Source: Auanema rhodensis
Lineage: Eukaryota > Animalia > Nematoda
Assembly (NCBI GenBank): GCA_964057225.1
Contig: OZ059900.1
Span: 6,138,001-6,202,000 of the forward strand
Length of the DNA stretch: 64,000 bases
Reading direction: 5' to 3'
A program made the translations under genes and the position numbers. This document shows, in pieces, positions 27,024 to 51,462 of this stretch (its first letter is position 1; the number at the start of each line of letters is the position of its first letter). Below the pieces are notes generated by a model, which was not told the origin of the DNA, made no database searches, and was given only the letters and a program-made list of their open reading frames with translations.

Positions 27024-28384
27024 ATGAGCGGTGTAATTATTTCGGAGCCTGAGCATGAGCCAACTCCATCAAAAAAAATTTGTCTCTGCATATCACCTAG
27101 CGTCAGTGGCGTTGTATCGCTGTGTGTTCAATTCATCACTCTAGTTGTAACTATGCTTGTGTGCATCTTCCTCTTCTACCATGCGGGAGGTTATGAGTAC
27201 ATGGGGTGGAATGAAAATTCAACAATGTTTGATCCTATAACATACGAGGCGTATTTGGATAGATTGTCTGATTTACCTGTTGGATTACCCGAATATGCTA
27301 CGGTATTCGAAAAATTAATCATTTTCATATACAAGTTGGGGATTATTTCAGAACGTAGATGAGAATAACTCAAGAAACGATACTTCTGACACATTTTTGA
27401 CCAATGCAACAACTTCTAATGAGCTTGAAATGGTATTCTTTCCCAGTTGCAATAGTTGCATAAAGCAAGAACACAAATTTCAGACAGACGGTGACAACAC
27501 GACAGAATACGACTATGGTGCTCATTTACTCGCTTTTGCCAATCATACGGTCAGTTCTCTTCAAACTTTCTAGCATTGTATATATTTTTGTTTTAATTTT
27601 TTAATTTAAAAAATTCAGAGAACTGAATTAGAAATGCTAGAATTAGCTCGTCTGTCAACTTTGGTCTACTTTGTTATTTGCATATTATGGTTCATGTCGT
27701 TATTCCTGCTCTTGACTTCAATCAAATACGAAATTTTGGATCTTGTGTGTGTTAATTCGTTCATATTAACAGTTGCCTCACTATATGCACTGATGCATGC
27801 GTTATTCGTATGTGTTCTACTATACTATCAGGTGATTATAGCAAACAAATTATATTAAAAATATCTCGTGAAGAAGCCTTATTCAAAATCAAGAAATTAA
27901 GCCTTATTAATAATTAGAACAATATTTAACTTTATATTCTATAACACATAGTGTATACATGTATATATTAATATAATCCTTGTTTAATCTAGCCTCAGAC
28001 TTCTTGGCGAACTTTGGCTATTGTAACTGGATCCGTAATCGTACTCATGGCTGGAACAATGCTCGGAGGATTTGCACTTCATCTAGATATTACCTGGTAC
28101 AAGTACATTGTTCATGTACATGGACAAGAAAAGGTAATTTCACAAAATCATCAAAAGTCAAAAAAAAAACAGAAAATACTCTCCTTTCGTTAACTAAAAA
28201 TGTTGAGACAAGGCATATCAAACCAATCAAAACTTGTTTCTAGTTCTTACTCATGGACTGGGTCGTTGGTTTAATTAAATGCAAGAAATGTTCTACTACT
28301 GAAGCAACTCAGCCAAGCTTAACTTACCAACGAGGATCTGAGCCAGGTGGATCCAATGATCAAGTTGTGTTCAGTGCGTTTTAG
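27024..28384 (+). CDS. Uncharacterised multi-pass (about 4 TM) membrane protein, 6 exons
   Basis: ATG at 27024. Hydrophobic exons VVSLCVQFITLVVTMLVCIFLFY, LVYFVICILWFMSLFLLL, FILTVASLYALMHALFVCVLLYYQ and TLAIVTGSVIVLMAGTMLGGFAL are joined by GT-AG introns. The protein ends ..DQVVFSAF* (TAG 28382-28384), with AATAAA at ~28435. Confidence 0.75.
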
Positions 28385-28521
28385 ATATTGGACACAATAT
28401 CGTACAGCCATCAATCGAAAAAAAATGATTCTTTAATAAAGCCTTACAATTTGAGAAAAATTCACATGGAGCAAGTCAATACAAACAAAACTAAACAGGA
28501 AAACATTTTGTAGTTTAACCC

Positions 28522-31500
28522 AGAAAAATCTCGTCGTCTAACATCGCTTTACATGATACGCCAATTCTCCACTTTTTCCACAATGCCTATCCTTCTCTAA
28601 AAATCTCCTCATTCCCCACAATGCATGAACCATCTCGTCGTCTAACATCGCTTTACATGATCCGCCAATTCTCCAGTTTTTCCATACTGCCTATCCTTCT
28701 CTAAAGATCTCCTCATTCCCCACAATGCCTGAGCCATCTCGTCGTCTAACATCGTTTTACATGATACGCCAATTCTCCAGTTTTTTAATACTGCCTATCC
28801 TTCTCTAAAGATCTCCTCATTCCCCACAATGCATGAACCATCTCGTCGTCTAACATCGTTTTACATGATACGCCAATTCTCCAGTTTTTCCATACTGCCT
28901 ATCCTTCTCTAAAGATCTCCTCATTCCACACAATGCCTGAGCCATCTCGTCGTCTAACATCGTTTTACATGATACGCCAATTCTCCAGTTTTTCCATACT
29001 GCCTATCCTTCTCTAAAGATCTCCTCATTCCCCACAATGCATGAACCATCTCGTCGTCTAACATCGTTTTACATGATACGCCAATTCTCCAGTTTTTCCA
29101 TACTGCCTATCCTTCTCTAAAGATCTCTTCATTCCCCACAATGCCTGAGCCATCTCGTCGTCTAACATCGTTTTACATGATACGCCAATTCTCCAGTTTT
29201 TCCATACTGCCTATCCTCCTCTAAAGATCTCTTCATTCCCCACAATGCATGAACCATCTCGTCGTCTAACATCGTTTTACATGATACGCCAATTCTCCAG
29301 TTTTTCCATACTGCCTATCCTTCTCTAAAGATCTCCTCATTCCACACAATGCCTGAGCCATCTCGTCGTCTAACATCGTTTTACATGATACGCCAATTCT
29401 CCAGTTTTTCCATACTGCCTATCCTTCTCTAAAGATCTCCTCATTCCCCACAATGCATGAACCATCTCGTCGTCTAACATCGTTTTACATGATACGCCAA
29501 TTCTCCAGTTTTTCCATACTGCCTATCCTTCTCTAAAGATCTCTTCATTCCCCACAATGCCTGAGCCATCTCGTCGTCTAACATCGTTTTACATGATACG
29601 CCAATTCTCCAGTTTTTCCATACTGCCTATCCTTCTCTAAAGATCTCCTCATTCCCCACAATGCATGAACCATCTCGTCGTCTAACATCGTTTTACATGA
29701 TACGCCAATTCTCCAGTTTTTCCATACTGCCTATCCTTCTCTAAAGATCTCCTCATTCCACACAATGCCTGAGCCATCTCGTCGTCTAACATCGTTTTAC
29801 ATGATACGCCAATTCTCCAGTTTTTCCATACTGCCTATCCTTCTCTAAAGATCTCCTCATTCCCCACAATGCATGAACCATCTCGTCGTCTAACATCGTT
29901 TTACATGATACGCCAATTCTCCAGTTTTTCCATACTGCCTATCCTTCTCTAAAGATCTCCTCATTCCCCACAATGCATGAACCATCTCGTCGTCTAACAT
30001 CGTTTTACATGATACGCCAATTCTCCAGTTTTTCCATACTGCCTATCCTTCTCTAAAGATCTCCTCATTCCCCACAATGCCTGAGCCATCTCGTCGTCTA
30101 ACATCGTTTTACATGATACGCCAATTCTCCAGTTTTTCCATACTGCCTATCCTTCTCTAAAGATCTCCTCATTCCCCACAATGCATGAACCATCTCGTCG
30201 TCTAACATCGTTTTACATGATACGCCAATTCTCCAGTTTTTCCATACTGCCTATCCTTCTCTAAAGATCTCCTCATTCCACACAATGCCTGAGCCATCTC
30301 GTCGTCTAACATCGTTTTACATGATACGCCAATTCTCCAGTTTTTCCATACTGCCTATCTTTCTCTAAAGATCTCCTCATTCCCCACAATGCATGAACCA
30401 TCTCGTCGTCTAACATCGTTTTACATGATACGCCAATTCTCCAGTTTTTCCATACTGCCTATCCTTCTCTAAAGATCTCTTCATTCCCCACAATGCCTGA
30501 GCCATCTCGTCGTCTAACATCGTTTTACATGATACGCCAATTCTCCAGTTTTTCCATACTGCCTATCCTTCTCTAAAGATCTCCTCATTCCCCACAATGC
30601 ATGAACCATCTCGTCGTCTAACATCGTTTTACATGATACGCCAATTCTCCAGTTTTTCCATACTGCCTATCCTTCTCTAAAGATCTCTTCATTCCCCACA
30701 ATGCCTGAGCCATCTCGTCGTCTAACATCGTTTTACATGATACGCCAATTCTCCAGTTTTTCCATACTGCCTATCCTTCTCTAAAGATCTCTTCGTTCCC
30801 CACAATGCATGAACCATCTCGTCGTCTAACATCGTTTTACATGATACGCCAATTCTCCAGTTTTTCCATACTGCCTATCCTTCTCTAAAGATCTCCTCAT
30901 TCCCCACAATGCATGAACCATCTCGTCGTCTAACATCGTTTTACATGATACGCCAAATCTCCAGTTTTTCCATACTGCCTATCCTTCTCTAAAAATCTCC
31001 TCATTCCCCACAATGTCTGAGCCATCTCGTCGTCTAACATCGTTTTACATGATACGCCAAATCTCCAGTTTTTCCATACTGCCTATCCTTCTCTGAAGAT
31101 TTCCTCATTCCCCACAATGCCTGAGCCATCTCGTCGTCTAACATCGTTTTACATGATACGCCAATTCTCCAGTTTTTCCATACTGCCTATCCTTCTCTAA
31201 AGATCTCCTCATTCCCCACAATGCATGAACCATCTCGTCGTCTAACATCGTTTTACATGATACGCCAATTCTCCAGTTTTTCCATACTGCCTATCCTTCT
31301 CTAAAGATCTCCTCATTCCCCACAATGCATGAACCATCTCGTCGTCTAACATCGTTTTACATGATACGCCAATTCTCCAGTTTTTCCATACTACCTATCT
31401 TTCTCTAAAGATCTCTTCATTCCCCACAATGCATGAACCATCTCGTCGTCTAACATCGTTTTACATGATACGCCAATTCTCCAGTTTTTCCATACTGCCT

Positions 31501-34500
31501 ATCCTTCTCTAAAGATCTCCTCATTCCCCACAATGCATGAACCATCTCGTCGTCTAATATCGTTTTACATGATACGCCAATTCTCCAGTTTTTCCATACT
31601 GCCTATCCTTCTCTGAAGATTTCCTCATTCCCCACAATGCATGAACCATCTCGTCGTCTAACATCGTTTTACATGATACGCCAATTCTCCAGTTTTTCCA
31701 TACTGCCTATCCTTCTCTAAAGATCTCTTCATTCCCCACAATGCATGAACCATCTCGTCGTCTAACATCGTTTTACATGATACGCCAATTCTCCAGTTTT
31801 TCCATACTGCCTATCCTTCTCTGAAGATTTCCTCATTCCCCACAATGCATGAACCATCTCGTCGTCTAACATCGTTTTACATGATACGCCAATTCTCCAG
31901 TTTTTCCATACTGCCTATCCTTCTCTAAAGATCTCTTCATTCCCCACAATGCATGAACCATCTCGTCGTCTAACATCGTTTTACATGATACGCCAATTCT
32001 CCAGTTTTTCCATACTGCCTATCCTTCTCTAAAGATCTCCTCATTCCCCACAATGCCTGAGCCATCTCGTCGTCTAACATCGTTTTACATGATACGCCAA
32101 ATCTCCAGTTTTTCCATACTGCCTATCCTTCTCTAAAGATCTCTTCATTCCCCACAATGCATGAACCATCTCGTCGTCTAACATCGTTTTACATGATACG
32201 CCAATTCTCCAGTTTTTCCATACTGCCTATCCTTCTCTAAAGATCTCCTCATTCCCCACAATGCATGAACCATCTCGTCGTCTAACATCGTTTTACATGA
32301 TACGCCAATTCTCCAGTTTTTCCATACTGCCTATCCTTCTCTAAAGATCTCTTCATTCCCCACAATGCCTGAGCCATCTCGTCGTCTAACATCGTTTTAC
32401 ATGATACGCCAATTCTCCAGTTTTTCCATACTGCCTATCCTTCTCTAAAGATCTCTTCATTCCCCACAATGCATGAACCATCTCGTCGTCTAACATCGTT
32501 TTACATGATACGCCAATTCTCCAGTTTTTCCATACTGCCTATCCTTCTCTAAAGATCTCTTCGTTCCCCACAATGCATGAACCATCTCGTCGTCTAACAT
32601 CGTTTTACATGATACGCCAATTCTCCAGTTTTTCCATACTGCCTATCCTTCTCTAAAGATCTCCTCATTCCCCACAATGCATGAACCATCTCGTCGTCTA
32701 ACATCGTTTTACATGATACGCCAAATCTCCAGTTTTTCCATACTGCCTATCCTTCTCTAAAAATCTCCTCATTCCCCACAATGTCTGAGCCATCTCGTCG
32801 TCTAACATCGTTTTACATGATACGCCAATTCTCCAGTTTTTCCAAACTGCCTATCCTTCTCTAAAGATCTCTTCATTCCCCACAATGCAAGAACCATCTC
32901 GTCGTCTAACATCGTTTTACATGATACGCCAATTCTCCAGTTTTTCCATACTGCCTATCCTTCTCTAAAGATCTCCTCATTCCCCACAGTGCATGAACCA
33001 TCTCGTCGTCTAACATCGTTTTACATGATACGCCAATTCTCCAGTTTTTCCACACTGCCTATCCTTCTCTGAAGATTTCCTCATTCCCCACAATGCCTGA
33101 GCCATCTCGTCGTCTAACATCGTTTTACATGATACGCCAATTCTCCAGTTTTTCCATACTGCCTATCTTTCTCTAAAGATCTCTTCATTCCCCACAATGC
33201 ATGAACCATCTCGTCGTCTAACATCGTTTTACATGATACGCCAATTCTCCAGTTTTTCCATACTGCCTATCCTTCTCTAAAGATCTCCTCATTCCCCACA
33301 ATGCCTGAACCATCTCGTCGTCTAACATCGTTTTACATGATACGCCAATTCTCCAGTTTTTCCATACTGCCTATCCTTCTCTAAAGATCTCCTCATTCCC
33401 CACAATGCATGAACCATCTCGTCGTCTAACATCGTTTTACATGATGCGCCAATTCTCCAGTTTTTCCATACTGCCTATCCTTCTCTAAAGATCTCCTCAT
33501 TCCCCACAGTGCATGAACCATCTCGTCGTCTAACATCGTTTTACATGATGCGCCAATTCTCCAGTTTTTCCATACTGCCTATCCTTCTCTAAAGATCTCC
33601 TCATTCCCCACAATGCATGAACCATCTCGTCGTCTAACATCGTTTTACATGATGCGCCAATTCTCCAGTTTTTCCATACTGCCTATCCTTCTCTAAAGAT
33701 CTCCTCATTCCCCACAATGCCTGAGCCATCTCGTCGTCTAACATCGTTTTACATGATACGCCAATTCTCCAGTTTTTCTATACTGCCTATCCTTCTCTAA
33801 AGATCTCTTCATTCCCCACAATGCATGAACCATCTCGTCGTCTAACATCGTTTTACATGATACGCCAATTCTCCAGTTTTTCCATACTGCCTATCCTTCT
33901 CTAAAGATCTCTTCATTCCCCACAATGCATGAACCATCTCGTCGTCTAACATCGTTTTACATGATACGCCAATTCTCCAGTTTTTCCAAACTGCCTATCC
34001 TTCTCTAAAGATCTCCTCATTCCCCACAATGCATGAACCATCTCGTCGTCTAACATCGTTTTACATGATACGCCAAATCTCCAGTTTTTCCATACTGCCT
34101 ATCCTCCTCTAAAGATCTCCTCATTCCCCACAGTGCATGAACCATCTCGTCGTCTAACATCGTTTTACATGATACGCCAATTCTCCAGTTTTTCCAAACT
34201 GCCTATCCTTCTCTAAAGATCTCTTCATTCCCCACAATGCATGAACCATCTCGTCGTCTAACATCGTTTTACATGATACGCCAATTCTCCAGTTTTTCCA
34301 TACTGCCTATCCTTCTCTAAAGATCTCCTCATTCCCCACAGTGCATGAACCATCTCGTCGTCTAACATCGTTTTACATGATACGCCAATTCTCCAGTTTT
34401 TCCACACTGCCTATCCTTCTCTGAAGATTTCCTCATTCCCCACAATGCCTGATCCATCTCGTCGTCTAACATCGTTTTACATGATACGCCAATTCTCCAG

Positions 34501-37500
34501 TTTTTCCATACTGCCTATCTTTCTCTAAAGATCTCTTCATTCCCCACAATGCATGAACCATCTCGTCGTCTAACATCGTTTTACATGATACGCCAATTCT
34601 CCAGTTTTTCCATACTGCCTATCTTTCTCTAAAGATCTCCTCATTCCCCACAATGCATGAACCATCTCGTCGTCTAACATCGTTTTACATGATACGCCAA
34701 TTCTCCAGTTTTTCCATACTGCCTATCCTTCTCTAAAGATCTCCTCATTCCCCACAATGCATGAACCATCTCGTCGTCTAACATCGTTTTACATGATACG
34801 CCAATTCTCCAGTTTTTCCATACTGCCTATCCTTCTCTAAAGATCTCCTCATTCCCCACAATGCCTGAACCATCTCGTCGTCTAACATCGTTTTACATGA
34901 TACGCCAATTCTCCAGTTTTTCCATACTGCCTATCCTTCTCTAAAGATCTCTTCATTCCCCACAATGCATGAACCATCTCGTCGTCTAACATCGTTTTAC
35001 ATGATACGCCAATTCTCCAGTTTTTCCATACTGCCTATCCTTCTCTAAAGATCTCTTCATTCCCCACAATGCATGAACCATCTCGTCGTCTAACATCGTT
35101 TTACATGATACGCCAATTCTCCAGTTTTTCCATACTGCCTATCCTTCTCTAAAGATCTCCTCATTCCCCACAATGCATGAACCATCTCGTCGTCTAACAT
35201 CGTTTTACATGATGCGCCAATTCTCCAGTTTTTCCATACTGCCTATCCTTCTCTAAAGATCTCCTCATTCCCCACAATGCCTGAGCCATCTCGTCGTCTA
35301 ACATCGTTTTACATGATACGCCAATTCTCCAGTTTTTCCATACTGCCTATACTTCTCTAAAGATCTCCTCATTCCCCACAATGCATGAACCATCTCGTCG
35401 TCTAACATCGTTTTACATGATACGCCAATTCTCCAGTTTTTCCACACTGCCTATCCTTCTCTAAAGATCTCCTCATTCCCCACAGTGCATGAACCATCTC
35501 GTCGTCTAACATCGTTTTACATGATGCGCCAATTCTCCAGTTTTTCCATACTGCCTATCCTTCTCTAAAGATCTCCTCATTCCCCACAATGCATGAACCA
35601 TCTCGTCGTCTAACATCGTTTTACATGATGCGCCAATTCTCCAGTTTTTCCATACTGCCTATCCTTCTCTAAAGATCTCCTCATTCCCCACAATGCCTGA
35701 GCCATCTCGTCGTCTAACATCGTTTTACATGATACGCCAATTCTCCAGTTTTTCCACACTGCCTATCCTTCTCTAAAGATCTCCTCATTCCCCACAATGC
35801 CTGAGCCATCTCGTCGTCTAACATCGTTTTACATGATACGCCAATTCTCCAGTTTTTCCATACTGCCTATCCTTCTCTAAAGATCTCCTCATTCCCCACA
35901 GTGCATGAACCATCTCGTCGTCTAACATCGTTTTACATGATACGCCAATTCTCCAGTTTTTCCATACTGCCTATCCTTCTCTAAAGATCTCTTCATTCCC
36001 CACAATGTCTGAGCCATCTCGCCGTCTAACATCGTTTTACATGATACGCCAATTCTCCAGTTTTTCCATACTGCCTATCCTTCTCTAAAGATCTCCTCAT
36101 TCCCCACAATGCATGAACCATCTCGTCGTCTAACATCGTTTTACATGATACGCCAATTCTCCAGTTTTTCCATACTGCCTATCCTTCTCTAAAGATCTCT
36201 TCATTCCCCACAATGCATGAACCATCTCGTCGTCTAACATCGTTTTACATGATACGCCAATTCTCCAGTTTTTCCATACTGCCTATCCTTCTCTAAAGAT
36301 CTCCTCATTCCCCACAATGCCTGAGCCATCTCGTCGTCTAACATCGTTTTACATGATGCGCCAATTCTCCAGTTTTTCCATACTGCCTATCCTCCTCTAA
36401 AGATCTCCTCATTCCCCACAATGCATGAACCATCTCGTCGTCTAACATCGTTTTACATGATACGCCAATTCTCCAGTTTTTCCATACTGCCTATCCTTCT
36501 CTAAAGATCTCCTCATTCCCCACAATGCATGAACCATCTCGTCGTCTAACATCGTTTTACATGATGCGCCAATTCTCCAGTTTTTCCATACTGCCTATCC
36601 TCCTCTAAAGATCTCCTCATTCCCCACAATGCATGAACCATCTCGTCGTCTAACATCGTTTTACATGATACGCCAATTCTCCAGTTTTTCCACACTGCCT
36701 ATCCTTCTCTAAAGATCTCCTCATTCCCCACAATGCATGAACCATCTCGTCGTCTAACATCGTTTTACATGATACGCCAATTCTCCAGTTTTTCCATACT
36801 GCCTATCCTTCTCTAAAGATCTCCTCATTCCCCACAATGCATGAACCATCTCGTCGTCTAACATCGTTTTACATGATACGCCAATTCTCCAGTTTTTCCA
36901 TACTGCCTATCCTTCTCTAAAGATCTCCTCATTCCCCACAATGCATGAACCATCTCGTCGTCTAACATCGCTTTACATGATACGCCAATTCTCCAGTTTT
37001 TCCATACTGCCTATCCTTCTCTAAAGATCTCCTCATTCCCCACAATGCCTGAGCCATCTCGTCGTCTAACATCGTTTTACATGATACGCCAATTCTCCAG
37101 TTTTTCCATACTGCCTATCCTTCTCTAAAGATCTCTTCATTCCCCACAATGCATGAACCATCTCGTCGTCTAACATCGTTTTACATGATACGCCAATTCT
37201 CCAGTTTTTCCATACTGCCTATCCTTCTCTAAAGATCTCTTCATTCCCCACAATGTCTGAGCCATCTCGTCGTCTAACATCGTTTTACATGATACGCCAA
37301 TTCTCCAGTTTTTCCATACTGCCTATCCTTCTCTAAAGATCTCTTCATTCCCCACAATGCATGAACCATCTCGTCGTCTAACATCGTTTTACATGATACG
37401 CCAATTCTCCAGTTTTTCCATACTGCCTATCCTTCTCTAAAGATCTCTTCATTCCCCACAATGTCTGAGCCATCTCGTCGTCTAACATCGTTTTACATGA

Positions 37501-38415
37501 TACGCCAATTCTCCAGTTTTTCCATACTGCCTATCCTTCTCTAAAGATCTCTTCATTCCCCACAATGCATGAACCATCTCGTCGTCTAACATCGTTTTAC
37601 ATGATACGCCAATTCTCCAGTTTTTCCATACTGCCTATCCTTCTCTAAAGATCTCCTCATTCCCCACAATGCATGAACCATCTCGTCGTCTAACATCGTT
37701 TTACATGATGCGCCAATTCTCCAGTTTTTCCATACTGCCTATCCTTCTCTAAAGATCTCCTCATTCCCCACAATGCCTGAGCCATCTCGTCGTCTAACAT
37801 CGTTTTACATGATACGCCAATTCTCCAGTTTTTCCATACTGCCTATACTTCTCTAAAGATCTCCTCATTCCCCACAATGCATGAACCATCTCGTCGTCTA
37901 ACATCGTTTTACATGATACGCCAATTCTCCAGTTTTTCCACACTGCCTATCCTTCTCTAAAGATCTCCTCATTCCCCACAGTGCATGAACCATCTCGTCG
38001 TCTAACATCGTTTTACATGATGCGCCAATTCTCCAGTTTTTCCATACTGCCTATCCTTCTCTAAAGATCTCCTCATTCCCCACAATGCATGAACCATCTC
38101 GTCGTCTAACATCGTTTTACATGATGCGCCAATTCTCCAGTTTTTCCATACTGCCTATCCTTCTCTAAAGATCTCCTCATTCCCCACAATGCCTGAGCCA
38201 TCTCGTCGTCTAACATCGTTTTACATGATACGCCAATTCTCCAGTTTTTCCACACTGCCTATAATTCTCTAAAGATCTCCTCATTCCCCACAATGCATGA
38301 ACCATCTCGTCGTCTAACATCGTTTTACATGATACGCCAATTCTCCAGTTTTTCCACACTGCCTATCCTTCTCTAAAGATCTCCTCATTCCCCACAGTGC
38401 ATGAACCATCTCGTC
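28522..38415 (-). repeat. Satellite array A: 104-bp monomer x95
   Basis: Monomer on + strand: TCTCGTCGTCTAACATCGTTTTACATGATACGCCAATTCTCCAGTTTTTCCATACTGCCTATCCTTCTCTAAAGATCTCCTCATTCCCCACAATGCATGAACCA. First TCTCGTC at 28529 and last at 38409, i.e. exactly 95 x 104. The + strand is pyrimidine-rich. Strand is given by the orientation of the shared box. Confidence 0.98.
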
Positions 38416-41400
38416 AACATGGGAAACGAACCCAGGCGACGAGATGGTTCAGATAGCATTGCAACTGCCGAGGTAGTTAGAGAGTTGTAGATATCATGAG
38501 AAAGTAAGATGCTAAGCTCAATATGGGAATGGACGCTAGATGACGAGATGGTTCAGATATCATTGAAACTGCCGAGGTAGTTAGAGAGTTGTAGGTATCA
38601 TGAGAAAGTAAGATGCTAAGCTCAACATGGGAAACGAACCCAGGCGACGAGATGGTTCAGATAGCATTGCAACTGCCGAGGTAGTTAGAGAGTTGTAGAT
38701 ATCATGAGAAAGTAAGATGCTAAGCTCAATATGGGAATGGACGCTAGATGACGAGATGGTTCAGATATCATTGAAACTGCCGAGGTAGTTAGAGAGTTGT
38801 AGGTATCATGAGAAAGTAAGATGCTAAGCTCAATATGGGAATGGACGCTAGATGACGAGATGGTTCAGATATCATTGAAACTGCCGAGGTAGTTAGAGAG
38901 TTGTAGGTATCATGAGAAAGTAAGATGCTAAGCTCAACATGGGAACCGAACCCAGGCGACGAGATGGTTCAGATAGCATTGCAACTGCCGAGGTAGTTAG
39001 AGAGTTGTAGATATCATGAGAAAGTAAGATGCTAAGCTCAATATGGGAATGGACGCTAGATGACGAGATGGTTCAGATATCATTGAAACTGCCGAGGTAG
39101 TTAGAGAGTTGTAGGTATCATGAGAAAGTAAGATGCTAAGCTCAACATGGGAAACGAACCCAGGCGACGAGATGGTTCAGATAGCATTGCAACTGCCGAG
39201 GTAGTTAGAGAGTTGTAGATATCATGAGAAAGTAAGATGCTAAGCTCAATATGGGAATGGACGCTAGATGACGAGATGGTTCAGATATCATTGAAACTGC
39301 CGAGGTAGTTAGAGAGTTGTAGGTATCATGAGAAATTAAGATGCTAAGCTCAACATGGGAAACGAACCCAGGCGATGAGATGGTTCAGATAGCATTGCAA
39401 CTGCCGAGGTAGTTAGAGAGTTGTAGATATCATGAGAAAGTAAGATGCTAAGCTCAATATGGGAATGGACGCTAGATGACGAGATGGTTCAGATATCATT
39501 GAAACTGCCGAGGTAGGTAGAGAGTTGTAGATATCATGAGAAAGTAAGATGCTAAGCTCAACATGGGAAACAAACCCAGGCGACGAGATGGTTCAGATAT
39601 CATTGAAACTGCCGAGGTAGTTAGAGAGTTGTAGATATCATGAGAAAGTAAGATGCTAAGCTCAACATGGGAATCGAACCCAGGCGACGAGATGGTTCAG
39701 ATATCATTGAAACTGCCGAGGTAGTTAGAGAGTTGTAGATATCATGAGAAAGTAAGATGCTAAGCTCAACATGGGAATCGAACCCAGGCGACGAGATGGT
39801 TCAGATATCATTGCAACTGCCGAGGTAGTTAGAGAGTTGTAGATATCATGAGAAAGTAAGATGCTAAGCTCAACATGGGAAACGAACCCAGGCGACGAGA
39901 TGGTTCAGATATCATTGAAACTGCCGAGGTAGTTAGAGAGTTGTAGATATCATGAGAAAGTAAGATGCTAAGCTCAACATGGGAAACGAACCCAGGCGAC
40001 GAGATGGTTCAGATATCATTGAAACTGCCGAGGTAGTTAGAGAGTTGTAGATATCATGAGAAAGTAAGATGCTAAGCTCAATATGGGAAACGAACCCAGG
40101 CGACGAGATGGTTCAGATAACATTGCAACAGCCGAGGTAGTTAGAGAGTTGTAGATATCATGAGAAAGTAAGATGCTAAGCTCAACATGGGAAACGAACC
40201 CAGGCGACGAGATGGTTCAGATATCATTGAAACTGCCGAGGCAGTTAGAGAGTTGTAGATATCATGAGAAAGTAAGATGCTAAGCTCAACATGGGAATGG
40301 ACGCTAGATGACGAGATGGTTCAGATATCATTGAAACTGCCGAGGTAGTTAGAGAGTTTTAGATATCATGAGAAAGTAAGATGCTAAGCTCAATATGGGA
40401 AACGAACCCAGGCGACGAGATGGTTCAGATAACATTGCAACAGCCGAGGTAGTTAGAGAGTTGTAGATATCATGAGAAAGTAAGATGCTAAGCTCAACAT
40501 GGGAAACGAACCCAGGCGACGAGATGGTTGAGATATCATTGAAACTGCCGAGGCAGTTAGAGAGTTGTAGATATCATGAGAAAGTAAGATGCTAAGCTCA
40601 ACATGGGAATGGACGCTAGATGACGAGATGGTTCAGATATCATTGAAACTGCCGAGGTAGTTAGAGAGTTGTAGATATCATGAGAAAGTAAGATGCTAAG
40701 CTCAACATGGGAATGGACGCTAGATGACGAGATGGTTCAGATATCATTGAAACTGCCGAGGTAGTTAGAGAGTTGTAGATATCATGAGAAAGTAAGATGC
40801 TAAGCTCAATATGGGAATATACGCTAGATGACGAGATGGTTCAGATATCATTGAAACTGCCGAGGTAGTTAGAGAGTTGTAGATATCATGAGAAAGTAAG
40901 ATGCTAAGCTCAACATGTTAATGGACGCTAGATGACGAGATGGTTCAGATATCATTGAAACTGCAGAGGTAGTTAGAGAGTTGTAGATATCATGAGAAAG
41001 TAAGATGCTAAGCTCAACATGGGAATGGACGCTAGATGACGAGATGGTTCAGATATCATTGAAACTGCCGAGGTAGTTAGAGAGTTTTAGATATCATGAG
41101 AAAGTAAGATGCTAAGCTCAACATGGGAAACGAACCCAGGCGACGAGATGGTTGAGATATCATTGAAACTGCCGAGGCAGTTAGAGAGTTGTAGATATCA
41201 TGAGAAAGTAAGATGCTAAGCTCAACATGGGAATGGACGCTAGATGACGAGATGGTTCAGATATCATTGAAACTGCCGAGGTAGTTAGAGAGTTGTAGAT
41301 ATCATGAGAAAGTAAGATGCTAAGCTCAACATGGGAATGGACGCTAGATGACGAGATGGTTCAGATATCATTGAAACTGCCGAGGTAGTTAGAGAGTTGT

Positions 41401-43859
41401 AGATATCATGAGAAAGTAAGATGCTAAGCTCAATATGGGAATATACGCTAGATGACGAGATGGTTCAGATATCATTGAAACTGCCGAGGTAGTTAGAGAG
41501 TTGTAGATATCATGAGAAAGTAAGATGCTAAGCTCAACATGTTAATGGACGCTAGATGACGAGATGGTTCAGATATCATTGAAACTGCAGAGGTAGTTAG
41601 AGAGTTGTAGATATCATGAGAAAGTAAGATGCTAAGCTCAACATGGGAATGGACGCTAGATGACGAGATGGTTCAGATATCATTGAAACTGCCGAGGTAG
41701 TTAGAGAGTTGTAGATATCATGAGAAAGTAGGATGCTAAGCTCAACATGGGAAACGAACCCAGGCGACAAGATGGTTCAGATAGCATTGCAACTGCCGAG
41801 GTAGTTAGAGAGTTGTAGATATCATGAGAAAGTAAGATGCTAAGCTCAACATGGGAAACGAATCCAGGCGACGAGATGGTTCAGATATCATTGCAACTGC
41901 CGAGGTAGTTAGAGAGTTGTAGATATCATGAGAAAGTAAGATGCTAAGCTCAACATGGGAAACGAACCCAGGCGACAAGATGGTTCAGATAGCATTGCAA
42001 CTGCCGAGGTAGTTAGAGAGTTGTAGATATCATGAGAAAGTAAGATGCTAAGCTCAACATGGGAAACGAACCCAGGCGACAAGATGGTTCAGATAGCATT
42101 GCAACTGCCGAGGTAGTTAGAGAGTTGTAGATATCATGAGAAAGTAAGATGCTAAGCTCAACATGGGAATGGACGCTAGATGACGAGATGGTTCAGATAT
42201 CATTGAAACTGCCGAGGTAGTTAGAGAGTTGTAGATATCATGAGAAAGTAAGATGCTAAGCTCAACATGGGAAACGAACCCAGGCGACGAGATGGTTCAG
42301 ATATCATTGAAACTGCCGAGGCAGTTAGAGAGTTGTAGATATCATGAGAAAGTGAGATGCTAAGCTCAACATGGGAATGGACGCTAGATGACGAGATGGT
42401 TCAGATATCATTGAAACTGCCGAGGTAGTTAGAGAGTTGTAGATATCATGAGAAAGTAAGATGCTAAGCTCAACATGGGAAACGAATCCAGGCGACGAGA
42501 TGGTTCAGATATCATTGCAACTGCCGAGGCAGTTAGAGAGTTGTAGATATCATGAGAAAGTGAGATGCTAAGCTCAACATGGGAATGGACGCTAGATGAC
42601 GAGATGGTTCAGATATCATTGAAACTGCCGAGGTAGTTAGAGAGTTGTAGATATCATGAGAAAGTAAGATGCTAAGCTCAACATGGGAAACGAATCCAGG
42701 CGACGAGATGGTTCAGATATCATTGCAACTGCCGAGGCAGTTAGAGAGTTGTAGATATCATGAGAAAGTGAGATGCTAAGCTCAACATGGGAATGGACGC
42801 TAGATGACGAGATGGTTCAGATATCATTGAAACTGCCGAGGTAGTTAGAGAGTTGTAGATATCATGAGAAAGTAAGATGCTAAGCTCAACATGGGAAACG
42901 AATCCAGGCGACGAGATGGTTCAGATATCATTGAAACTGCCGAGGCAGTTAGAGAGTTGTAGATATCATGAGAAAGTGAGATGCTAAGCTCAACATGGGA
43001 ATGGACGCTAGATGACGAGATGGTTCAGATATCATTGAAACTGCCGAGGTAGTTAGAGAGTTGTAGATATCATGAGAAAGTAAGATGCTAAGCTCAACAT
43101 GGGAAACGAACCCAGGCGACGAGATGGTTCAGATATCATTGAAACTGCCGAGGTAGTTAGAGAGTTGTAGATATCATGAGAAAGTAAGATGCTAAGCTCA
43201 ACATGGGAATGGACGCTAGATGACGAGATGGTTCAGATATCATTGAAACTGCCGAGGTAGTTAGAGAGTTGTAGATATCATGAGAAAGTAAGATGCTAAG
43301 CTCAACATGGGAAACGAATCCAGGCGACGAGATGGTTCAGATATCATTGCAACTGCCGAGGTAGTTAGAGAGTTGTAGATATCATGAGAAAGTAAGATGC
43401 TAAGCTCAACATGGGAAACGAACCCAGGCGACAAGATGGTTCAGATAGCATTGCAACTGCCGAGGTAGTTAGAGAGTTGTAGATATCATGAGAAAGTAAG
43501 ATGCTAAGCTCAACATGGGAAACGAACCCAGGCGACGAGATGGTTCAGATATCATTGAAACTGCGGAGGTAGTTAGAGAGTTGTAGATATCATGAGAAAG
43601 TAAGATGCTAAGCTCAACATGGGAAACGAACCCAGGCGACGAGATGGTTCAGATATCATTGAAACTGCCGAGGTAGTTAGAGAGTTGTAGATATCATGAG
43701 AAAGTAAGATGCTAAGCTCAACATAGGAAACGAACCCAGGCGACGAGATGGTTCAGATATCATTGAAACTGCCGAGGTAGTTAGAGAGTTATAGATATCA
43801 TGAGAAAGTAAGATGCTAAGCTCAACATGGGAATGGACGCTAGATGACGAGATGGTTTA
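38416..43859 (+). repeat. Satellite array B: 104-bp monomer x52, diverged homolog of array A in inverted orientation
   Basis: Monomer: GACGAGATGGTTCAGATATCATTGAAACTGCCGAGGTAGTTAGAGAGTTGTAGATATCATGAGAAAGTAAGATGCTAAGCTCAACATGGGAA-[TGGACGCTAGAT or ACGAACCCAGGC]. First box at 38438 and last at 43846, i.e. exactly 52 x 104. The + strand is purine-rich. Confidence 0.98.
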
Positions 43860-44050
43860 ATGTATTTAGATTCATAGTTTTCGGTGTTCTGTTTTTGTTA
43901 CTCAGCCAAACTGTTGAAACAATGTTGTCCATCTTTTTGTCATATTGCATATGAGACGGTTGAAAGTTTATGTAGTTTTTGTATATTTCATGTTATTAAA
44001 GAAGAAGATATGGTAGTTTGACCTATATCCTGATAGTCAGGAATACTTTT

Positions 44051-44060: not shown

Positions 44061-44655
44061 TCACAGTTTGTGTTACGAAATTAATCTTATTCTGTTATGT
44101 CATATAATATTGAGACGCTCTCTATTCAATATTCATTTCAGTCTTTCAGTTTAATTCATTTTGTTTTTACCCTCTCCTGTTTTGTAAGATAAAAAAACTT
44201 TTCTTTCCAAAGTATATGTGGACCAATCTGTGATTTATCACGATGTAATGGTTCTTCACGTTCTAAAAATTACTAGTATATCTTTGCTGAATTATCTAAA
44301 TGAAAGTATTTTTTAATTTCTGTTTTGCTTTAATCTTTTTCAAAATTCGTTTGTACTATATATTCAGATACTGTTAATCAATTGGTGGGGTAATTAATTT
44401 CCCCAGTGCCATAAATATATGATAATTATTTTGTCTGTGAGTACGGTAGTCAAATATATATGCATATTTTCACGTATGCGTTGTTTTTTTGGCGTCTAAA
44501 ATTGAGTTGAAGTTTTTATATATTCTATTTGTCTAGTGATTTATAATTATTTTCTTATTTCTTTCAACATATTGTCTTTTCTCTTCTATTTGAATTATTT
44601 CTTTTCAGGAGTTAGCTTTCGAATTGGTCTTCAAAGATTCAGTTCGGATTACAAC

Positions 44656-45243
44656 ATGGTTAGTTATATTAAGTATATGATATAATTTTTTCTTGTTTAG
44701 GTAATCGAAAAACCCTTTTATAGTGATTTTGATATGTTTCTGGAAAAAGGTGATGCTTTAGATCGGGAAATTCGTGAAGAAGTTGTAAAACAAGAAGCCG
44801 TTGCTGAAGAAATTTATAATGAAAAAGACAGACGGGCCCAACGTATGGGAGCATTGATCAACGTTCCCTCGAATCATACTATGCAAATGCTGGATACTCA
44901 AAGACGATTGGAAGTCACTGAGGATGATCTGATCACGGAGATGAAAGAAAGCAATAAGCTATCATCTGAAGTATTGGAGATGAAGAGAAAGCTGGCACAG
45001 ATTAGAAGACTACTCGAAATCAAAACGAACGATTTGAGTGTGGAAGAGAGACATTATTACTTGATGCAAGTGGAATATCGTAAACTTCATGCAATGATGA
45101 TTGATTACATGAAATTCATTCATAGTCAATTGCAAAACTATTTCGACGAATGTATTCGTATACCTGTGGATGTGATGGAAGAATATCATATCCATCTAAA
45201 TCAATTCAAACAAGTGAAACGCCTTTTAAAAAGTAAACTGTAA
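44656..45243 (+). CDS. Uncharacterised ~181 aa alpha-helical/coiled-coil protein (paralog 1)
   Basis: ATG 44656-44658, a 42-nt intron (44659-44700), then an exon in frame with the 169-aa ORF: M|VIEKPFYSDFDMFLEKGDALDREIREEVVKQE... There is a TTTTCAG acceptor at ~44608 and AATAAA at ~45387. The protein is E/K/L/M-rich and homologous to the next gene. Confidence 0.8.
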
Positions 45244-46162: not shown

Positions 46163-46618
46163 ATGCCATTCTATAACGATTATGAAATGTTTGCTAATGA
46201 AGGAAAAGTTTTCCGAGAAGAACTCAATGATGAAATTGCTGTACAAGAAAAAGAATGTGTACTGATCTATGAGAATAAAATGAGTTCTGAACAAAACGAA
46301 ATTGTTCAACTCATAAATGCCGATCATGAAGAACTAAATTCTCCACAACAAGTCCGCCAACATGATCCGAGAAATGAAATCTGGACAGACATAGAAGAGA
46401 AGTTTGCTCATGTTAAAAATATTCTGGACGTGAAAACTGATGAGATGTCTGACATGACAAGAAATGCTTACTTAAGCCAACTGGAATGCCATAAACTCGC
46501 GCTGATGACTGATTACTTGAAATTTGTATTCAGTCAAGGTGATGACTACAGAGAAGAGTTTCTACTAACGAAACAACATTTTAAAGAACTTGAACATGCT
46601 CTGAATATGAAATCGTGA
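46163..46618 (+). CDS. Uncharacterised 151 aa alpha-helical/coiled-coil protein (paralog 2)
   Basis: MPFYNDYEMFANEGKVFREELNDEI aligns to PFYSDFDMFLEKGDALDREIREEV of paralog 1. LDVKTDEMS..YLSQLECHKLALMTDYLKFVFSQ aligns to LEIKTNDLS..YLMQVEYRKLHAMMIDYMKFIHSQ. An intron at 46109-46153 is in the equivalent position, and AATAAA lies at ~46765. Confidence 0.8.
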   Translation: MPFYNDYEMFANEGKVFREELNDEIAVQEKECVLIYENKMSSEQNEIVQLINADHEELNSPQQVRQHDPRNEIWTDIEEKFAHVKNILDVKTDEMSDMTRNAYLSQLECHKLALMTDYLKFVFSQGDDYREEFLLTKQHFKELEHALNMKS

Positions 46619-47107: not shown

Positions 47108-49736
47108 GAAAACATATCTGTTATTAATAGATTGATTAGTATAACATCTTGGTATAGTTGATGTGTTCCAGGTTAGTTGAAAACTTTCATTGGTTCAAAT
47201 CCTCTCTAAGAAATTTATAAAAACAAAAAATCTCTCTCTTTCTCTCTCTCTCTCTCTCTTTCTCTCTATAAATACGTATCCTCACTTGAATCTTGAAACA
47301 TCTCTGAGAACTCAATTCTAAAATACGACTTCAGAAAACTTCGATTCCAGCAAAAACTTGATAGAAGTTTACTAAAAAGAAATTCTCCAAACATTTCTGA
47401 AATATTCAACTTTTTAAGTTTATAACAAACATTATACTTTATTAAACTGAAGGAAATGATATAGACTACTATGAGCAGTATGGCCTAACGGTGTACTGCA
47501 TGGATTACAGGTTAGGTAACTGAGTTCAATACCTTTCTCTGTTTTTTAAGAAAATCAATATCAAATCGAGAATCCAAAAAACGGTCGAATGGATTTGGAC
47601 TGTGAAAAATCGTTCTTTTTCAAAGTTTTGAGCTTTGTAGCTCAGTTAGAAATTAATATTTTTCAATTTTGATTGAACGGGCAAATTGTGGAAGATGAAC
47701 TCTTTCATCTCACCAAATCTTAATATCCTATCTGGTCTAGTATAGAAGTTGTAGCCTCCTAAACAGGAGAGATAAAGTCAAAAACGTGACTTTGAAACGT
47801 TATATCTCCTTAACCGTTGAGTTTTTCTGGAAACTTTTTGCGGATCTGAATTCTACGTGAAAAGATCTTTTAGAAAAGCTGCCTATATTGAAGATTGGAG
47901 TAGTTTGAAATTTTGAAAAATAGAGAATTCGACCAATTTCCGGTTTGAGAAATAAAAATTTCGAGTTTTTTAAAAATTGAGGGTTGCATCTGATAAAGCT
48001 TGAAATGCTGGTTTCAAATATGAAAAGCAAATTTCTTCATTCTCATTGTGAAAGGAGTTATGAGACTTTTTATGTTTTGATGTTTTGTTTTCAGAAGGCC
48101 TTATCTACCTTCAGACGACATTTGAGGAATTTTTAGTTAACAGAATCGTTTTCTACGTGTCTGTTTTACTTGGTCAACTTAGTTTCAAATCATTTTGTTC
48201 GAATTTTCAATTTTCGATCAAATGGTCGAAATCCATGTACCCCTTACCTACTTTTTCATCAAAGTTGACCATCATCACATGAAATTTTAAGATTTTCACA
48301 AGTTTTTTGTTGTTTTCCAATTTGAAACAACTTCTAACTTGAGAGATTTGTAATGAAAGCAGTGTTCCACGAGAATCGGAATAGTCACAAGTTTTAGGTT
48401 AACAAGATTTGTTGAGCATCTGAATAATTGTTAGATGAGACAATCATTTCTTGAACTTTCAAAGTATATTTATTAATTCTTTTCTAATATCTTTAATTCT
48501 TATTTTTATAAAATATAATTAAAGAAAAAAACTTGAGAAAATCTTAAAATTTCATGTGATGATGGTCAACTTTGATGAAAAAGTAGGTAAGGGGGTAGTA
48601 CATGGATTTGGACCATTTGATCGAAAATTGAAAATTCGAACAAAATGATTTGAAACTAAGTTGACCAAGTAAAACAGACACGTAGAAAACGATTCTGTTA
48701 ACTAAAAATTCCTCAAATATCGTCTGAAGGTAGATAAGGCCTTCTGAAAACAAAACATCAAAACATAAAAAGTCTCATAACTCCTTTCACAATGAGAATG
48801 AAGAAATTTGCTTTTCATATTTGAAACCAGCATTTCAAGCTTTATCAGATGCAACCCTCAATTTTTAAAAAACTCGAAATTTTTATTTCTCAAACCGGAA
48901 ATTGGTCGAATTCTCTATTTTTCAAAATTTCAAACTACTCCAATCTTCAATATAGGCAGCTTTTCTAAAAGATCTTTTCACGTAGAATTCAGATCCGCAA
49001 AAAGTTTCCAGAAAAACTCAACGGTTAAGGAGATATAACGTTTCAAAGTCACGTTTTTGACTTTATCTCTCCTGTTTAGGAGGCTACAACTTCTATACTA
49101 GACCAGATAGGATATTAAGATTTGGTGAGATGAAAGAGTTCATCTTCCACAATTTGCCCGTTCAATCAAAATTGAAAAATATTAATTTCTAACTGAGCTA
49201 CAAAGCTCAAAACTTTGAAAAAGAACGATTTTTCACAGTCCAAATCCATTCGACCGTTTTTTGGATTCTCGATTTGATATTGATTTTCTTAAAAAACAGA
49301 GAAAGGTATTGAACTCAGTTACCTAACCTGTAATCCATGCAGTACACCGTTAGGCCATACTGCTCATAGTAGTCTATATCATTTCCTTCAGTTTAAAAAA
49401 GAATAATGTTTGTTATAAACTTAAAAAGTTGAATATTTCAGAAATGTTTGGAGAATTTCTTTTTAGTAAACTTCTATCAAGTTTTTGCTGGAATCGAAGT
49501 TTTCTGAAGTTGATATCGTATCTTAGAATTGAGTTCTCAGAGATGTTTCAAGATTCAAGTAAGGATACATATTTATAGAGAGAAAGAGAGAGAGAGAGAG
49601 AGAAAGAGAGAGATTTTTTGTTTTTATAAATTTCTTAGAGAGGATTTGAACCAACGAAAGTTTTTAACTAACCTGGAACACATCAACTACACCAAGATGT
49701 TATACTATTCAATCTATTAATATCAGATATGTTTTC
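47108..49736. mobile_element. Foldback / long-TIR non-autonomous element: ~1.2 kb near-identical inverted arms with ~215 bp spacer
   Basis: The left arm (~47108-48308) is the reverse complement of the right arm (~48525-49736). The ORF track gives identical 76-aa peptides on opposite strands (47800-48030 minus and 48808-49038 plus). Only scattered substitutions and small indels separate the arms. No transposase is present. Confidence 0.9.
47473..47534 (+). other. tRNA-derived Pol III A/B-box-like cassette inside the foldback arm (mirror copy ~49304-49365 minus)
   Basis: TGGCCTAACGG (47481-47491, A-box-like) and GAGTTCAATAC (47522-47532, B-box-like) at tRNA-like spacing. No convincing acceptor stem, so it is not called a tRNA. 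Confidence 0.45.
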
Positions 49737-50388: not shown

Positions 50389-51126
50389 TTATTGTTTTAT
50401 AAGCTTAAACATGTTTTTTTTCCAATCAACATCGATAGACAACTTCAAATTTTCCATTGCATTTGCTCCAAGAATATTAACAAACTTGAAATTGCCTTTT
50501 GAAACTTGACATTCGATATTGCTTTCCTGGTCCTAAATATTCGTAACTATTTATTAAATTACACACAAAGGAGAAAACTAACTTGAATCGAAAAACTGTA
50601 GAGAGATCGAGTAGCTTTTCCTGAGCCAAAGAACGCCTCTAATGACTTCACAGTAAGACATGTGAAAGGGGAAGCAGTGTCAACGAAGAACCAAACGAGC
50701 ATGGCTTTCAAATCCTTTTTACCAGCAGGCTGACAAACCAAAGGAATCATTAAGCGATTGTTTAGACCATGAATACAACCACTGACTGGAAAAGCTGGAG
50801 AAACAAAATTGCTGGGACTTGTGAAGTGTTCAATTTCATTATGGTGGCCAATCTCAAAACACAAAATTTAGAATAAATCATAAAAACCTTTATCCTACTT
50901 TTATGAGAACTTCCTCTGTGATATCACTTAGCACAACGTCAAATTCTTTAAAAGGAATAGCCAACTTAGAGAAATATAATGTAAAGATTGTAAAAAGAAA
51001 AATATATACTTACTTCATAATACGTATCTGTCGAATTCTGAAAATCTCTCATTCTAATTGAATTGATTAATACAGCTAAAAATAAAAAAAAGGAATAAAA
51101 CAAAAATTGTGAACTAACGCAAACAT
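50389..51126 (-). CDS. Stand-alone retropepsin-like (clan AA, peptidase A2-like) aspartic protease domain protein
   Basis: Exons LAIPFKEFDVVLSDITEEVLIK|IGHHNE..RLMIPLVC..VWFFVDTASPFTCLTVKSLEAF..SFSIQ|DQESNIECQVSKGNFKFVNILGANAMENLKLSIDVDWKKNMFKLIKQ*. It has a D-T-(A for G)-S catalytic motif plus the downstream NILG motif. The 5' exons (MFA|IRQIRIMK) join with a 1-nt phase problem. Confidence 0.7.
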
Positions 51127-51309
51127 GAAAAATAAACAAATACTACTATCTCGGAGAATGTATAATCTCAATATAATACGAAAACAAAAAGCGGGAAATA
51201 TTATATAAAGTTATTACAGATCATAGCTGAATCAACAAACTACAACAAGATGTGAATATAGAAACTATCTTCCACTATAACCAATGATCAAAATTTTGAA
51301 AAATTGACT

Positions 51310-51462
51310 AGACAACGATCATGTACCGTAGTTTGCTCGAGTATTATTGAATTTTTGAAACAAGAAGTGAATTTAGGAATTATCTACCACTCTAACCAGA
51401 AATATATCTGATATTAATAGATTGAACAGTATGACATCTTGGTGTAGTTGATGTGTTTCAGT
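51310..51462 (+). repeat. Dispersed direct copy of 47061-47172 (outer end of the foldback element)
   Basis: AGACAACGATCATGTACCGTAGTTTGCTCGAGTATTATTGAATTTT vs AGACAACCATCATTTACCGTAGTTTGCTCATGTATTATTGAATTTT. After a ~40 bp insertion, ATATCTG.TATTAATAGATTGA..AGTAT.ACATCTTGGT.TAGTTGATGTGTT is again shared. Confidence 0.8.

Follow-up and report, generated by a model that had tools for sequence, protein, structure and literature searches.

Strongly diverged satellite monomers that still hold a short box in common are known from Meloidogyne. In M. chitwoodi and M. fallax, satellites that are 32-64% alike share a short box, and the transitions from one monomer to another are at the box (PMC3694981). 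In M. incognita the alphaCenH3 repeats, with monomers of 45-83 bp that are 56-73% alike, have a GC-rich, dyad-forming and fully conserved 19-bp box and bind CenH3 (PMC8097292). We describe here a 15-kb satellite locus of Auanema rhodense (deposited as Auanema rhodensis; assembly GCA_964057225.1, contig OZ059900.1, positions 6,138,001 to 6,202,000 of the forward strand) in which two tandem arrays, A and B, lie back to back between two genes and share a 14-base box. The 64,000 nucleotides analysed are referred to as the window, and all positions given are counted from its first base.

The locus resembles that of M. chitwoodi and M. fallax in organisation, having diverged homologous monomers and ends at the box, and by this analogy it may be considered a candidate, and only a candidate, for the class of protein-bound satellites. 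However the M. chitwoodi and M. fallax satellites form a library of multi-family higher-order repeats, with a Box 1 that resembles the CENP-B box and also a Box 2, whereas here we have two pure inverted arrays of equal monomer length, apparently at one gene-rich locus, and the box is the stem of a hairpin. With regard to the 19-bp box of M. incognita, our locus differs in its fixed monomer length and in having a polymorphic box with no sequence match to the other (10/19, p 0.6).

Tandem repeats have likewise been amplified within inverted-ended elements in Tetris TIR-220 (PMC4079207) and Xmix/Xstir (PMC6004289), and the TTAA border found at our arrays is also that of T2-MITEs. In contrast to these our locus has no clean terminal inverted repeat (TIR), its arms are 59% alike, it is a single copy and its termini are not the AG/RR of Kolobok. 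The pairing centres and rex sites of C. elegans are likewise clusters of short motifs on X. For A. rhodense itself, the accessible text of a preprint (bioRxiv 10.64898/2026.08.27.747507) gives the eliminated families AT, AC, XT and XR units of 167-504 bp in multi-megabase blocks, and reports that somatic X pieces retain blocks of tandem repeats; a 104-bp, 15-kb array is not described in the main text of that preprint, so far as that text is accessible. What is unusual in our locus is the combination of two pure arrays, 41% apart, of equal monomer length, inverted, at one gene-rich site, and with the shared block on a hairpin stem.

Two inverted arrays of a 104-bp monomer

The features of the arrays are as follows.

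28528..38415, minus strand: array A, 95 full 104-bp monomers and 8 bp of the box at the outer end
38416..43857, plus strand: array B, a 22-bp partial monomer, 52 full monomers and 12 bp of the box at the outer end
38402..38451, no strand: A/B junction, an interrupted palindrome with a box at 38402-38415 (minus), a 22-bp loop at 38416-38437 and a box at 38438-38451 (plus)
28514..28535, plus strand: left outer end, TTTAA (28514-28518), CCC, a 6-bp spacer and the last 8 bases of the reversed box
43846..43860, plus strand: right outer end, the box through GG, then TTTAA (43856-43860)

The two arrays abut, A then B. Tandem Repeats Finder (TRF) gives both a period of 104 bp with 0% indels, at 95.1 copies and 97% matches for A (28528-38415) and 52.3 copies and 93% matches for B (38414-43857), and the exact period reported in a preliminary description of this DNA is thus borne out. 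The counts made there by hand were also reproduced: the reverse complement of the A consensus aligns to the B consensus without gaps at 61 of the 104 positions, and the 43 differences are 24 transitions and 19 transversions (Kimura two-parameter distance 0.63). The optimal global alignment is gap-free, the next-best offset scores 41 and the mean over offsets is 29. With 61/104 at one offset and no more than 41 at any other, the homology of A and B is secure. They are strongly diverged descendants of one 104-bp monomer in back-to-back arrangement, and within itself either arm is homogeneous.

The 14-base box common to A and B is GACGAGATGGTTCA. A search allowing up to one mismatch, for which 0.01 matches are expected by chance, found 147 matches at exact 104-bp spacing, of which the 94 that precede the junction are on the minus strand and the 53 that follow it are on the plus strand. 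One further A copy, with more than one mismatch, and the partial box at the left end bring these to about 149, in agreement with the earlier count of boxes pointing outward from 38415/38416. The purine-rich strand of array A reads leftwards, and the reversal of skew described at the junction is seen for both GC and AT skew.

Within array A there are 39 distinct monomers with a mean pairwise difference of 3.0 bp. The order of monomer variants along this array (28528-38415) includes block duplications, for example seven monomer types in the same order 24 units apart, which point to recent unequal exchange. Array B consists of two interspersed sub-variants, B1 (28 monomers) and B2 (24), each of which matches array A at 61/104. 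They differ at seven sites, all of them at monomer positions 93-104 directly 5' of the box (cluster p 2e-6), with no fixed difference across the remaining 92 bp. It follows from the packing of these differences into 12 bp that block-wise identity with sharp edges arises within this satellite family. The arms are too diverged from each other, and too separately homogenised, for the order of monomer variants to be compared in mirror fashion. No degenerate source copy of the monomer was found in the 64-kb window, a pattern common to A and B gave 0 matches in metagenomes, and a literature search with the box string gave nothing relevant among the papers it listed.

The repeat is present in fifteen sequencing runs from four studies. 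In one of them (X6) contig depth is 22 for a 2,662-bp contig that holds the left edge and unique flank, 1,600 and 1,480 for two A contigs and 463 for a circular B contig. Division of the last three by the mean multiplicity of the same 31-mers in the window (77.6, 67.7 and 25.0) gives 20.6, 21.9 and 18.5 per copy against 22 for the flank, so this locus alone explains the family in X6, at the ploidy of its gene-rich flank; contig depth is a rough figure, here taken from a single run, and would miss diverged relatives as well as a few copies confined to the germline. A family of near-identical arrays at other loci in retained DNA, dispersed or X-wide as had been envisaged, is not supported. The suggestion that the arrays are a target of programmed DNA elimination is contradicted. 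The accessible preprint text gives eliminated A. rhodense DNA about 29x coverage as against 236x, and describes the SFE as a 29-bp palindrome with telomere addition (bioRxiv 10.64898/2026.08.27.747507). The depth of the array equals that of its flank, so it is not eliminated relative to that flank, no SFE-type 29-bp palindrome is present in the arrays or at their ends, and there is no telomere hexamer in the arrays.

The junction hairpin and a proposed fold-back origin

The junction folds as DNA at -19 kcal/mol (z -7), with a perfect 14-bp stem that is the box and a 22-bp loop, and the arms run outwards from it in register. The loop is of B1 type and has an inner 4-bp stem, and there is a 2-bp microhomology, TC, at 38414-38415. 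Within that microhomology, the shared block starts exactly at the junction end of A, and the chance that positions 3-14 next to the junction would all match at an overall identity of 61/104 is 0.001. The strongest signal on the box is this positional one, that the shared block starts at the junction hairpin. Three of the four array ends fall within the box (p 0.011), and the divergent block of B1 and B2 likewise abuts it. The bottom strand of the native B1 monomer has a weak fold in about the same register as the junction (-2.5 kcal/mol, not significant). The coincidence of the box with the stem of the junction hairpin offers a route to identity without selection.

We tentatively prefer, at somewhat less than an even chance, to read the locus as a fold-back palindromic satellite, in which the arms have been homogenised separately and template switching at the hairpin of the junction has kept the box the same in both. 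An ancestral 104-bp array would have been copied by fold-back, that is by a template switch, leaving the 22-bp loop. Opposite orientation would isolate the two arms, and turnover by unequal exchange and conversion would then proceed in each separately. The junction hairpin would be the only site for short-range pairing of A with B, and template switching there would re-equalise the loop-proximal part of the stem, after which re-amplification would spread the equalised stretch through the arms. The junction would thus define the box, and not the reverse. In-register exchange among units of equal length would hold the period at 104, and no selected function would be required for the locus. Template switching is known to homogenise the arms of inverted repeats (PMC8604942); for this locus we infer that a fold-back took place, that template switching has gone on at the stem and that re-amplification spread the equalised stretch. 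The hairpin at the seam, the shared block that starts there, a box as polymorphic as the rest of the monomer, a depth that indicates one locus and the sharp-edged B1/B2 block all support a fold-back origin.

There are also points that weigh against this origin. It requires the recent spread of a converted junction monomer through an entire arm, an improbable event unless amplification was polarised from the junction, and the A monomer adjacent to the junction is no more B-like (59/104) than other A monomers. The outer ends, both of them in the box and next to TTAA, are explained by a fold-back only as mirrors of one ancestral end, and the sequence beyond the two ends is not homologous. The contigs listed for four runs include none that bridges 38415/38416; such contigs drop rare links. 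Finally, the absence of indels among about 128 events and the result of a McDonald-Kreitman (MK)-like test (p=0.03), both taken up below, fit selection as well or better.

Selection and other alternatives

A close rival, though somewhat less probable than the fold-back origin, is a selected cis-element, which at a single and probably X-linked place would offer about 150 outward, helically phased sites (104 bp being about 10 turns) to a putative protein. Its role would lie in pairing, segregation, the seeding of kinetochores or the insulation of chromatin, and bound protein or chromatin would focus rearrangement at the box, where three of the four ends lie. The preliminary description saw an invariant 14-bp box kept by selection, and this holds in part. 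Between consensus sequences the longest circular identical run is 15 when the majority consensus is used and 14 with B2, and the next is 7. Among copies however the box varies: a difference at box position 11 occurs in 28 of the 95 A copies (in 27 of them T>C, a change that is linked to G at position 15), and the 52 copies of B carry 7 box changes. The variants of the box are mostly rare, and the frequent one is a T/C transition, which is in keeping with selection, but the density of segregating sites in the box is not lowered (6/28 against 45/180 outside, p 0.82).

The probability of such a run under neutral divergence, a check proposed in the preliminary description, is 0.014 by permutation for a run of at least 14 and 0.008 for one of at least 15, but it rises to 0.04-0.16 if substitutions are clustered; the lag-1 autocorrelation outside the box is 0.04. 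The box by itself is modestly significant (p≈0.01). The MK-like test, which compares fixed with polymorphic sites in the box and in the rest of the monomer, gives p=0.03, a result that weak per-copy selection would produce, but so would recent conversion between the arms. The p-values that favour selection are post hoc.

The best support for the selective-constraint argument of the preliminary description is the constancy of monomer length. Among about 128 substitution events (63 within-array alleles and about 65 inferred substitutions between the arrays) not one indel occurs, whereas other non-coding duplicates in the window have 10 gaps per 105 substitutions, these controls being more AT-rich and probably more indel-prone than the arrays. 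The probability of finding no indel is about 3e-6 at a ratio of 1:10 and 0.04 at 1:40. This suggests a constraint on length, but in-register exchange may also produce a constant length.

Copy number is similar in the assembly and in a 2024 sample, which also favours a selected element, and the CenH3-bound Meloidogyne repeats with their shared 19-bp box (PMC8097292) provide a precedent. The accessible text of the A. rhodense preprint speculates on a part for X-specific repeats in pairing and drive. Against selection, depth in X6 indicates no near-identical array elsewhere, in contrast to the dispersed boxes of CENP-B, pairing centres, rex sites and Meloidogyne, and the Meloidogyne motifs match at chance level. 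Among the roles first proposed, recruitment of the dosage-compensation condensin is not supported, as A. rhodense has a single SMC-4 homologue (PMC12629237 Table 2) and no DPY-27, the SMC-4 duplicate. Nor does a pairing-centre-type array find support: the TTGG..TG motif of HIM-8/ZIM (11/12 bp) matches the box at best at 8/12 (p 0.36), no better than it matches shuffles, and the TTGG core is absent, in agreement with the earlier remark that the box matches no C. elegans pairing-centre motif. No array was found beside homologues of the left flanking gene in other nematodes, a weak test given that these are distant species with about 50% protein identity. We consider it distinctly unlikely that a soma-retained, back-to-back pair of phased-site arrays recruits a putative protein and contributes in this way to the unusual pairing or segregation of X.

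It is unlikely too that the locus is the relic of a non-autonomous transposon with a TTAA target, piggyBac-like with CC...GG termini and of fold-back type, whose sub-terminal box repeats were amplified and then joined by internal deletion. The ends are the reason to consider it. Both stop in the box, both are bordered by TTTAA, and there is CC inside the left and GG inside the right, for which the post hoc chance is 0.009 on a loose pattern and 0.0003 on a strict one; the left edge is present in two read sets (X6 and X8). The boxes face the termini, the junction has its 2-bp microhomology, and Tetris TIR-220 and Xmix/Xstir are precedents. However the TIR is broken on the left by a spacer of 6-7 bp, part of the right TTAA is box sequence, and a 6-bp direct repeat near both ends is of a kind that arises by chance (p 0.076). 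The arms of fold-back elements are normally near-identical, but here they are only 59% alike. No significant long terminal inverted repeats or homologous flanks were detected, neither a second copy (depth indicates a single locus) nor a transposase was found, and the Kolobok/T2 termini (AG/RR) do not fit.

That A and B are two independently drifting subfamilies, with the 14-bp run and the positions of the ends due to chance, we regard as improbable. The run p of 0.014, or 0.04-0.16 with clustering, would allow it, and the number of match runs overall is unremarkable (22 against 25.5, p 0.11), but the low autocorrelation outside the box and the coincidence of the run with the junction (p 0.001) speak against it, and the zero indels are left unexplained. 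Least probable is an assembly mis-join of two separate arrays. It would fit the lack of a bridge at 38415/38416 among the contigs listed for the four runs, with 38425-38444 covered in X6 by the B circle only. But public contigs are filtered, and although array B must have edges its circle shows none. To judge from the accessible part of its description, the assembly from which the window probably comes was made from HiFi reads. The depth-based copy numbers match the window, and a mis-join would not itself put the seam at the point where the shared block starts.

Genomic setting, possible transcription and significance

The genes on either side are as follows.

27024..28440, plus strand: left neighbour, a multi-exon membrane-protein gene homologous to ZC13.2, with its last exon at 28244-28384 and AATAAA at 28435-28440
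44602..45243, plus strand: right neighbour, an orphan gene with acceptor TTTTCAG at 44602-44608 and ATG at 44656; paralogue at 46163-46618

The arrays begin about 90 bp past the AATAAA of the left gene and stop about 750 bp before the right gene, both genes being on the plus strand, and the flanks, at about 30% GC, are in line with the 32.2% of the A. rhodense genome. Homologues of the left gene, searched for with its first exon only, are found in strongylids, Mesorhabditis and Caenorhabditis, and a search with the Ancylostoma homologue reached ZC13.2 on chromosome X of C. elegans. A gene for a kinase like that of sad-1, which is X-linked in C. elegans, is found where the window begins. The locus is thus probably X-linked, though linkage to the C. 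elegans X does not tell apart the two ancestral elements of which that chromosome is composed. ZC13.2 is at about 0.88 Mb, near the left end of the C. elegans X, and contains 21-bp repeats that resemble the HIM-8 motif; the position and the repeats are probably a coincidence.

The orphan gene and its paralogue form a tandem pair (44656-45243 and 46163-46618) whose proteins are 27-29% identical. For the first copy no homologue was found in protein, Pfam or Atlas searches, one of which is blind to longer or shorter kin.

Further along the window there is an inverted duplication (47108-48308 and 48526-49736), 98.1% identical over 1,211 bp, with a 217-bp spacer, (TC)18 in each arm and no long open reading frame (ORF); it is possibly a fold-back element or young palindrome, and pieces of its outer end recur at 51307-51461. 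Older inverted duplications, at 69% and 75%, are present at 19571-19804/20375-20601 and 46522-46624/51877-51981, in non-coding or unannotated DNA. An ORF at 50559-50864 (minus strand) has a VDTAS stretch reminiscent of the active-site motif of aspartic proteases, with no Pfam match.

With regard to transcription, both monomers occur as circles with no splicing in one run (X10), which is RNA by guess only, the value for B being 14.8 and that for A 5.5. Per copy in the window this puts B at about six times A, against parity in DNA, with a rough binomial p of 0.01 to 1e-6 depending on the read length assumed. Array B may be transcribed at a low level, perhaps with the upstream region of the downstream gene. 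The segment 38380-38470, if folded as RNA, gives a long hairpin (-36 kcal/mol, z -5.5), which would have the size of a microRNA precursor if transcribed.

Three RNA readings of the monomer were considered and rejected. Array B has GTAAG and TTCAG 53 bp apart, but a tandem exon-intron gene would have a 51-nt exon with stops in all three frames, array A has no donor, and the circles in X10 are unspliced. The box has what we take to be a resemblance to a tRNA 5' end and A-box, a weak mir-3473 match shows a similar string, and the minus strand of B1 has a T-loop-like string; however ARAGORN found no tRNA, and Rfam gave no match at gathering score and only chance-level ones at E up to 10, so a tRNA or Pol III relic is not indicated. 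As a structured RNA the monomer folds no better than shuffles (z -1.1 to +1.5).

If the fold-back origin holds, the locus would be a clean natural test between two explanations debated for the conserved boxes of diverged satellites, selection for binding and the geometry of recombination. As the repeat is apparently confined to a single 15-kb locus between two genes, the box could be deleted or mutated as a whole. If instead a protein binds it, the locus would provide a cis-acting candidate, open to mapping, for the non-Mendelian inheritance of the A. rhodense X, on which the preprint, in its accessible text, only speculates, and for large repeat blocks. Were it an X element of that kind, it would be a compact, deletable, single-locus element of chromosome behaviour, unlike pairing centres, rex sites or SFEs.

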